A stretch of DNA of 64,000 bases from Chara braunii. Lineage: Eukaryota; Plantae; Charophyceae. Shown here in pieces: positions 17,045 through 17,763 of the stretch. Numbering within the stretch: the stretch's first letter is position 1; each line of letters begins with the position of its first letter. A program made the translations under genes and the position numbers. The stretch lies in assembly GCA_003427395.1 (NCBI GenBank), contig BFEA01000024.1:5530721-5594720 (forward strand). Direction: 5' to 3'. The notes under the pieces were generated by a model. It was not told the origin of the DNA. It saw nothing but the letters and a program-made list of their open reading frames with translations, and made no database searches.

Positions 17045-17763
17045 AGCTAGGTCACCCAAACTTATGGGAACCTGCCTAGCTCAGCCAGAATATACACAAA
17101 CAGAGGGCACAACAATTTTTCTCTTCTTTGGGCATATGCCTACGCCTCCCTAGTTCGCCTTGAACTGTTTAAGTATCCAAATTATATATATTTGTTTGCC
17201 CTTAGTCTTATAAGGTAGCATATGACTGAACCGATCAACTTGGTTCGAGGTCCAGCCTGCCCCTTCTTACCACAGATTTATTCTAAATTAATACTCTTTT
17301 CAGTTATGATAAGCTATAGTCAGACCATCTAAACGTATAAAAAAATGTCTGACTAGCCTGTTCATAAGTAATATAATATAAAATATAAACAAGTTTTACC
17401 TTATGATTCTAGCATGTGCGTGGCTTCAGACCAGACCTCCCAACTTATGGGAACCTGTCCGATCTGTCGCCAAAATCATCCCTCAGAATGAAACAAAGAG
17501 GGTCAGAGTCACCCAAACTTATGGAAAAATGCTCAACCCTTATTCAAAAACTAAATAAGCATATAAAAAAACCCAAATAAAAAAAGGTGACCAAGCCACC
17601 AAACTTATGGAAAAATGTTTGGTCCCTAAAAAATACAATCACATTCAGCCCTCGCAAGTCAAAGCAACCAGACCACCCAAACTTATCGGAACATTTCTGA
17701 TCCTTCAGGCAATCCAAAATAAACATAGCACTGGGCCCTCCAAACTTATGGAGACTCTCCCAG
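17045..17763 (-). repeat. Array of about 7 stem-loops with a conserved CCA-TAAGTT-TGG apical motif (minus sense)
   Basis: The + strand motif CCAAACTTATGG lies inside different outer stems at 17045-17081, 17317-17355 (degenerate), 17427-17466, 17499-17540, 17589-17624, 17666-17702 and 17731-17763. Confidence 0.85.

Follow-up and report, generated by a model that had tools for sequence, protein, structure and literature searches.

Paralogous copies of a Chara braunii repeat carry collinear hairpin arrays with different apical modules

Does one row of hairpins carry different recognition elements in two related transposon copies? A 64-kb stretch of Chara braunii DNA (here called the window; all positions are window coordinates) raises this question, as an earlier note on its sequence had claimed that two paralogous repeat copies share a scaffold of hairpins and spacers and that the loop motif is swapped across the whole array between them. 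The window is eukaryotic in character, with many transposons and microsatellites, and in a self-comparison of the 64 kb we found two paralogous non-coding stretches that are inverted relative to each other (Table 1). By blastn, the flanks of copy 1 and copy 2 match in three collinear blocks of 71 to 75% identity, and the middle between these blocks is otherwise unalignable, except for two short matching islands (17307-17378 with 26224-26156 and 17091-17134 with 26458-26414). The strings GATAAGCTATAGTCAGAC..TGACTA and TATACACAAACAGAGGGCAC..TCTCTTCTTTGGGCA, which had been listed as common to both copies, are indeed present as these islands. The 5' edge of copy 1 lies at about 18316 to 18322, and alignment of the 5' ends places the element start at TGCAG in copy 2 and TACGG in copy 1. 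On its 3' side, copy 1 is truncated by a Ty3/gypsy long terminal repeat (LTR), whose outer end it meets at 14939/14940.

Between the two copies there is an N gap (23158-23239), followed by a Nextera mate-pair junction adapter (23275-23312; CTGTCTCTTATACACATCT plus AGATGTGTATAAGAGACAG) with (GA)n on the flanks. The adapter within 23158-23312 is assembly contamination and, because gap and adapter separate the copies, their inverted juxtaposition may be a scaffolding artefact, which has no effect on the comparison of copy 1 with copy 2. The gypsy element that adjoins copy 1 occupies 1-14939 on the minus strand, with a gag zinc knuckle at 9040-10053, a reverse transcriptase at 7011-7730 and an integrase at 5401-6150; its reverse-transcriptase open reading frame (ORF) has 73 to 90% identity to annotated Chara braunii proteins. 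The upstream terminal repeat of this element is rearranged: a 237-bp LTR segment occurs twice, and a 1.8-kb pol fragment (12579-14374, 96.8% identical to 3779-5575) separates the two occurrences. We rejected the possibility that copy 1 is a part of the adjoining gypsy LTR, since the other copy of that LTR ends at 1777 against coding sequence that is not copy-1-like.

Table 1. The two copies of the repeat and their hairpins. Copy-1 hairpins are numbered 1 to 8 and copy-2 hairpins h1 to h9.
Feature	Position	Strand	Description or evidence	Bits
Copy 1 of non-coding repeat	~14940-18316	-	blastn blocks to copy 2, alignments of both ends, DNA word depth	
Conserved 5' block of copy 1	17789-18312	-	75% identical to 25240-25767 (blastn)	
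Hairpin 1	17731-17763	-	arms CTGGG/CCCAG, apical CTCCA-TAAGTT-TGGAG; no copy-2 counterpart	50.8
Hairpin 2	17666-17702	-	type-1 module AATGTTCCGATAAGTTTGGGTG	54.4
Hairpin 3	17589-17624	-	arms GACCAAA/CTTGGTC, type-1 module	52.3
Hairpin 4	17500-17540	-	arms GGGTTGAG/CTCtGACCC, type-1 module; downstream spacer orthologous to that of h4	
Hairpin 5	17427-17466	-	10-bp stem CAGATCGGAC/GTCTGGTCTG, type-1 module; orthologous to h5	
Hairpin 6	17317-17355	-	perfect 9-bp stem TAGTCAGAC/GTCTGACTA, decayed type-1 module; orthologous to h6	
Hairpin 7	17223-17258	-	arms GGCTGGAC/GTTCAGTC, decayed module; orthologous to h7	
Remnant at position of h8, module gone	17141-17165	-	array alignment	
Conserved spacer	17091-17134	-	87% identical to 26414-26458 (blastn)	
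Hairpin 8	17045-17081	-	arms AGCTAGG/CCTAGCT, type-1 module	56.6
Copy 2 of repeat	25237-29243	+	extent is that of the alignment with copy 1; blastn, end alignments	
Copy-2 array	25811-27392	+	nine hairpins, type-2 module AATGTGGCTTCGGT(CA/TT)	43-51 each

In copy 1, the motif CCAAACTTATGG (plus strand) occurs six times within 17056-17751 with zero or one mismatch, and the core CCATAAGTTTGG is exact in four of the six type-1 units and has a single mismatch in the remaining two. The corresponding stretch of copy 2 (25820-27383) contains seven AATGTGGCTTCGGTTT-like motifs and two weaker ones, and a count of seven was reached in 0 of 100 shuffles. The copy-1 array thus comprises six intact and two decayed two-tier hairpins and the copy-2 array nine, whose modules start at 25820, 25876, 25938, 26011, 26077, 26189, 26287, 26386 and 27368. 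A k-mer scan of the window gave no further dispersed-motif array. Between h8 and h9, copy 2 also holds an insertion of about 890 bp (26460-27350) that is missing from copy 1; it contains long runs of T and a 45-bp segment present twice (26844-26888 and 27028-27073), and is probably a nested small element.

Every motif is flanked by complementary arms, and the single hairpins have folding energies of -9.8 to -30 kcal/mol on the proposed strand, which is the one that reads from the conserved 5' block into the array. In each unit, about 40 nt long, a lower stem of about 9 bp is followed by an asymmetric internal loop and an apical stem-loop. The 5' strand of the internal loop is CAATGT in type 2 and CAGGTT, CATTTT or AATGTT in type 1, and its 3' strand is short. 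The apical stem-loop reads CCCA-TAAGTT-TGGG in copy 1 and (T)GGC-TTCG-G(T)(C/T)(A/T) in copy 2, the latter being a cUUCGg tetraloop on a wobble-rich helix.

To examine the stems, we aligned the hairpins on the module and imposed the two-tier structure, using the six intact units for type 1 and all nine for type 2. A partner-swap control is uninformative for these stems, because the arms of different hairpins resemble each other, and slid and shuffled controls were used in its place. In the type-1 alignment 84.2% of cells pair, compared with 20 to 55% when the 3' partner is slid by 1 to 3 columns, and changes on both sides are seen in 9 of 13 pairs. The corresponding values for type 2 are 85.5%, 11 to 44%, and 10 of 13, and when the lower-stem pairs are taken alone, both-side changes occur in 8 of 9 and 9 of 9 across the two types. 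The covariation score lay above 499 to 500 of 500 shuffles, and the type-2 score was reached by 0 of 500. Each apical helix also contains one double compensatory change, CTCCA/TGGAG at 17740 in type 1 and U-A for C-G in h8. The first of these is the inner-stem covariation of CCCA/TGGG with CTCCA/TGGAG that had been pointed out before (pair 19-32 of the type-1 alignment), and the full 10-bp stem CAGATCGGAC/GTCTGGTCTG is likewise present. The units of both arrays fold as two-tier hairpins with covarying stems.

Several familiar hairpin or repeat classes do not describe these units. A kink-turn was rejected for the internal loop, as the conserved G-A step is missing 5' in all variants (CAGGTT, CATTTT, AATGTT, and AGAGTC). 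The stems, of about 9 bp and 3 to 5 bp split by an internal loop, compare with the roughly 20 bp needed for a microRNA or hairpin-siRNA precursor, and at 9 plus 4 bp they are too short for Dicer-type processing. A simple tandem repeat or satellite was also rejected, since the spacers of different units do not align with each other (off-diagonal scores of about 14), and Tandem Repeats Finder (TRF) reported no tandem array at 17045-17763 or 25811-26410.

The apical module is fully replaced between the two copies. Mean module identity is 0.78 within type 1 and 0.81 within type 2 but 0.45 between types, which compares with 0.46 ± 0.06 for composition-matched shuffles of the modules. Covariance models built for each type recovered all of their own units at 43 to 57 bits, in their own copy only, and cross-type hits scored 15.6 bits or less; thus the two types are unmixed between the copies within the window, where randomly mixed loops had been named as an outcome that would speak against a swap. 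The decayed module of hairpin 6 scores 24.4 bits with the type-1 model and 15.6 with the type-2 model and is also closer to type 1 by identity (0.63 to 0.73, compared with 0.45). We also rejected the idea that an insertion or deletion turned one module into the other, as alignments between them are no better than those of shuffled sequence. Only letters of the 5' internal loop look common to both types (AATGT occurs in the unit at 17677 and in type 2) and, because this 5' side is partly shared, the swap concerns mainly the apical stem-loop and its 3' side.

We also compared what lies around the modules. The two arrays align globally in collinear order, and with the modules removed, we scored each copy-1 inter-module segment (S) against each copy-2 segment (T). 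The collinear pairs scored 28 (S4-T4), 30 (S5-T5), 38 (S6-T6), 35/58 (S7-T7/T8), and 31 (S8-T9), with S4 to S8 each the best of its own row and column, compared with an average of about 14 for unrelated pairs. For the 5'-most three positions, matching between the copies is ambiguous by these scores. Hairpin 6 is identical to h6 at 17 of 18 arm positions (TAGTCAGAC/GTCTGACTA compared with TAGTCACAC/GTCTGACTA), and hairpin 7 is identical to h7 at 14 of 18, with three arm differences that all keep the pair through G-U. Hairpin 8 adjoins the conserved 3' flank exactly as h9 does. Hairpin 1 is absent from copy 2, and h2 and h8 of copy 2 exist only as remnants in copy 1. Because spacers, arms, or both are orthologous there, at least five of the hairpin sites are older than the split between the copies. 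Positional homology of hairpins and spacers, which the earlier note had assumed for the array as a whole, thus holds at five sites, is ambiguous for the 5'-most three, and fails for hairpin 1, which has no partner.

The arms of non-orthologous hairpins share a loose consensus (7 to 13 of 18 positions alike), so both arrays descend from an older amplification of one hairpin unit, and the stems of different hairpins are diverged rather than unrelated. The statement that only the loops are homogenised therefore needs amending on this point: the module is fixed and the spacers are distinct, but the stems retain a loose likeness. The companion argument, that whole-unit amplification is inadequate, stands, since the spacers are older than the split of the copies and such amplification cannot explain the pattern.

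To place copy 1 within its family, we compared one DNA run and three RNA runs of Chara braunii with 14940-20900. Summed DNA word depth is 2,000 to 118,000 across copy 1 and 15 to 36 from 18323 on, so that the copy-1 values are hundreds of times those of the single-copy flank and copy 1 is a member of a very abundant repeat. The depth falls from about 10,000 to about 30 at 18322/18323, which marks the 5' edge of copy 1 as a true element boundary beside single-copy DNA. A total of 9,676 contig pieces match copy 1 at 95% identity or more, and copy 1 is thus close to many other copies; we infer that its 27% divergence from copy 2 lies mostly between subfamilies and is not decay after insertion. 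Because the comparison covers two subfamilies, any link between loop type and phylogeny has a sample size of n = 2.

Other members of the family carry type-1 modules at the same sites as copy 1. Contig joints and RNA read ends show an intact type-1 module on the TAGTCAGAC stem (for example, ...GATAAGCCATAGT joined to CAGACCACCCAAACTTAT), where copy 1 itself has a decayed one, and type-1 modules are also found at the 17056 and 17740 sites, in one case at 17740 with a different lower arm. Other contigs fuse module to module, with 188 to 336 bp skipped, and these joints show that units have been gained and lost through recombination at modules.

We give close to an even chance to the reading that the array is a multi-site docking row on the RNA of the element, with the apical module setting its specificity. 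The transcript would offer a row of docking sites to a single partner, which is most likely a protein. The lower stem (about 9 bp), whose letters may change provided that pairing is kept, would merely present the apical module, and the apical mini-hairpin would be fixed within each subfamily as CCCA-UAAGUU-UGGG or (U)GGC-UUCG-GYY. Both subfamilies would have inherited one hairpin row and later carried different modules at every site, which in turn would imply different partners or diverged versions of one partner. A new module could have spread by short conversion tracts between hairpins with similar arms, and we favour such tracts acting under selection for a changed partner because of the similar arms, the grouped sub-variants described below, and the recombination at modules. 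Among the parts of this reading, RNA as the folded strand is moderately supported; the protein nature of the partner, the role of the module in specificity, and co-evolution with the partner as the driver of the module change are our inferences. Against a docking row stands the exchange of about 20 nt at at least seven sites, for which no demonstrated mechanism accounts. A broader proposal, which we consider improbable, is that modular hairpin arrays of Chara retroelements serve as an exchangeable address system. In such a system the stems would be neutral and the key would be read by a co-evolving element or host protein, which would insulate subfamilies from each other in packaging, export, or escape from silencing, with keys spread by an undescribed form of directed short-tract replacement.

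The main rival to the docking row is concerted evolution that carries no specificity code, an explanation we regard as rather unlikely. Here short-tract gene conversion or template switching by reverse transcriptase would have spread a variant module that then drifted to fixation, so that module identity would have no recognition meaning, although the hairpins might still be needed as generic structure. The arms, alike at 7 to 13 of 18 positions, would provide the homology for conversion, sub-variants are grouped along the arrays (CATTTTT in the units at 17599 and 17513, GTCA in h1 to h4, and GTTT in h5 to h9), and the contigs that join modules across 188 to 336 bp are evidence of recombination at modules. 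However, the tracts would have to stop inside 20 to 40 bp at each site and leave arms and spacers distinct, and the near-invariance of the core CCATAAGTTTGG (exact in four of six units and one mismatch away in the other two) also speaks against this rival. The retention of the module in other members with a different lower arm points to constraint rather than drift.

The reading of the array as RNA depends on which strand folds, and here the evidence is mixed. On the proposed strand the lower stems have 17 G-U and 8 A-C combinations; the earlier suggestion that G-U pairs favour the minus strand of copy 1 therefore survives as a trend but is not significant in the lower stems (P = 0.11), and the G+T-richness of the modelled strand of copy 1 weakens the argument further. 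The type-2 apical helix, in comparison, has 15 G-U and no A-C, and folding energy is better on the proposed strand for 14 of 16 single hairpins. Over whole regions, copy 2 folds no better than shuffles (z = -1.6), and copy 1 folds on both strands (z = -6.2 for the plus strand and -3.6 for the minus strand), so these z-scores do not discriminate between strands. With moderate confidence, based on the hairpin sequences, we consider the strand that reads from the 5' block into the array the more likely functional one.

The same observations bear on the possibility that the array acts as duplex DNA. The modules of 17 to 22 bp would then be sites for transcription or chromatin factors, and the inverted repeats would favour cruciforms or be incidental. 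Folding of copy 1 on both strands, with the stronger z on the plus strand, and the lack of significance of the lower-stem G-U asymmetry are in line with this possibility, and repeated motifs are common in regulatory regions of transposable elements, the Sirevirus palindromes among them (PMC4728375). However, a duplex site gives no reason for arms that differ with compensating changes, the type-2 apical helix forms on one strand only, the only differences within the orthologous h7 pair pass through G-U intermediates, and the single-hairpin energies favour the proposed strand. We therefore consider a DNA-level cis-regulatory array quite unlikely, and less likely than concerted evolution without a specificity code; separate origins of the two arrays are also less likely than that. 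In the latter scenario the ancestor would have had few or no hairpins and each subfamily would have built its array from its own founder, with no swap at all. The unmatched first three positions, the hairpins found in one copy only, and the resemblance of h1 and h3 to a recent duplicate pair would all fit separate origins, but the five sites with orthologous spacers, arms, or both already disfavour them for the 3' part of the array, and h6 and h7 at least keep the same stem with different modules, which leaves this a very improbable account. Equally doubtful is pairing of the apical loops (UAAGUU/CCAUAAGUUUGG or GGCUUCGG) with another RNA, such as a primer tRNA, a small RNA, or a second site in the element: loop-loop contacts are known from retroviral leaders and nothing in this analysis speaks for them here, whereas we found no cis site complementary to either module, neither loop is self-complementary, and the window contains no tRNA gene with which to compare the loops.

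The RNA runs offered a further view of the strand. The locus attracted 17, 141, and 17 reads in the three runs, at 0.9 to 1.7 billion letters per run, and because nearly all of these reads match the locus only in part, they derive from other members of the family; expression of copy 1 itself was not detectable in the three runs. The range 17789-18312 takes most of the X5 and X7 reads and part of those from X6, the run whose sample yielded the most. First mates are mostly in plus orientation over 17925-18322 in all three runs and mostly in minus orientation over the array in X6, and this flip near 17925 suggests opposite reading directions for the 5' part and the array. If the libraries follow the usual convention, the very few array reads may be antisense to the proposed strand. 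An AG/GTAA sequence occurs at the same place in the 5' block of both copies (18018-18036 on the minus strand of copy 1), and 22 RNA reads of other members, across the three runs, diverge there. In reads whose match begins at 18036 and extends to the right, the part left of a conserved ...GTTCCC is variable, and AG/GTAA may be a conserved splice donor or a mere point of divergence.

The proposed docking row would have relatives in several known systems. The gammaretroviral GACG hairpin pair and the alphavirus stem-loop arrays with GGG in the loop are packaging or dimerisation signals bound by the element's own structural protein. As in the Chara arrays, a row of hairpins on a retroelement or viral RNA has a conserved loop motif and covarying stems, but the viral signals have 2 to 8 hairpins and a motif of 3 to 4 nt, compared with 8 to 9 two-tier units and a module of 17 to 22 nt here, where the window contains no gag linked to the copies. 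The coat-protein operator hairpins of the RNA phages MS2, PP7, and Q-beta and the lentiviral Tat-TAR pairs are cases in which a lineage-specific loop or bulge matches a co-evolved protein. They resemble the two copies in having one hairpin scaffold with a lineage-specific loop or bulge, but they are single sites with a known partner, whereas the Chara case is an array in a eukaryotic transposon with a putative partner. In bacteria, the sponge RNAs CsrB and RsmZ present a GGA motif in many hairpins and titrate or collect one protein; the likeness, many hairpins with one conserved loop motif on variable stems, involves no relation by descent. The VANC motifs of VANDAL transposons lie in tandem repeats, act as duplex DNA sites, and lack covarying stems. 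They are similar to the Chara modules in being family-specific short motifs multiplied in non-coding parts of transposons, where they would match a family-specific factor, but our evidence points to a folded single strand, and the comparison with VANC that had been drawn earlier serves as an analogy only.

The nearest published plant case that we found is that of the maize Sirevirus LTR palindromes, closely spaced hairpin-forming units in a non-coding part of a plant-lineage LTR retrotransposon (PMC4728375). In those palindromes the arms are conserved (CACCGGACtGTCCGGTG) and the centre varies (PMC4728375), and since the Chara units have the opposite design, with a conserved centre and varying arms, we rejected a Sirevirus-type array. 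A full-text literature search turned up no account of terminal repeats with conserved-loop hairpin arrays. The main value of the present case lies in the natural module-swap pair. If the module is a recognition key, the two copies amount to a natural swap experiment, with the same hairpin row and spacers and a different key. Such a pair would give a directly testable handle on how transposon subfamilies keep their RNAs separate in a streptophyte genome that is very rich in repeats, and would bear on the question of how an RNA signal with many sites can be respecified at every one of them and still function. Respecification of multi-site signals is a general problem for packaging signals and for protein-RNA co-evolution.

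As to the kind of element, the repeat is probably part of an LTR, an assignment that the window itself does not show. There is no second direct copy in the 64 kb that would make an LTR pair, the sole relative being inverted and 73% identical, and this absence may still be compatible with a solo or 5' LTR. No primer-binding site of the tRNA-iMet type was found in the window, and none of the ORFs within or next to the two copies matches Pfam. A protein search with a 96-amino-acid ORF of the conserved 5' block gave no match. Rfam 15 gave no match at the gathering score in the arrays and none at E ≤ 1 over 14940-29900, and pattern scans of metagenome and viral contigs returned only chance matches and unrelated simple tandem repeats.

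Other repeated features were seen in the window. A second repeated zone of the same element is present in both copies (16183-16754 and 27600-28010). Its units, about 124 bp long and counted by TRF at 2.6 copies in copy 1, contain GGAAGCGCTGCC-type near-palindromes and a TTCGGCAGC string and are without an Rfam match. Just past the end of the homology between copy 1 and copy 2, a module of about 320 nt at 29295-29620 is shared with 34560-34870 at about 69% identity, and the upstream context at the latter position is unlike that at the former. Finally, 61631-61800 matches Rfam SSU_rRNA_eukarya at 84.8 bits and holds the final 146 nt of 18S rRNA, whose last letters are ...GGAAGGATCATTG, with an A-rich tail directly behind them; remote from any rDNA unit, this piece is a retro-copied or captured 3' fragment of 18S rRNA.
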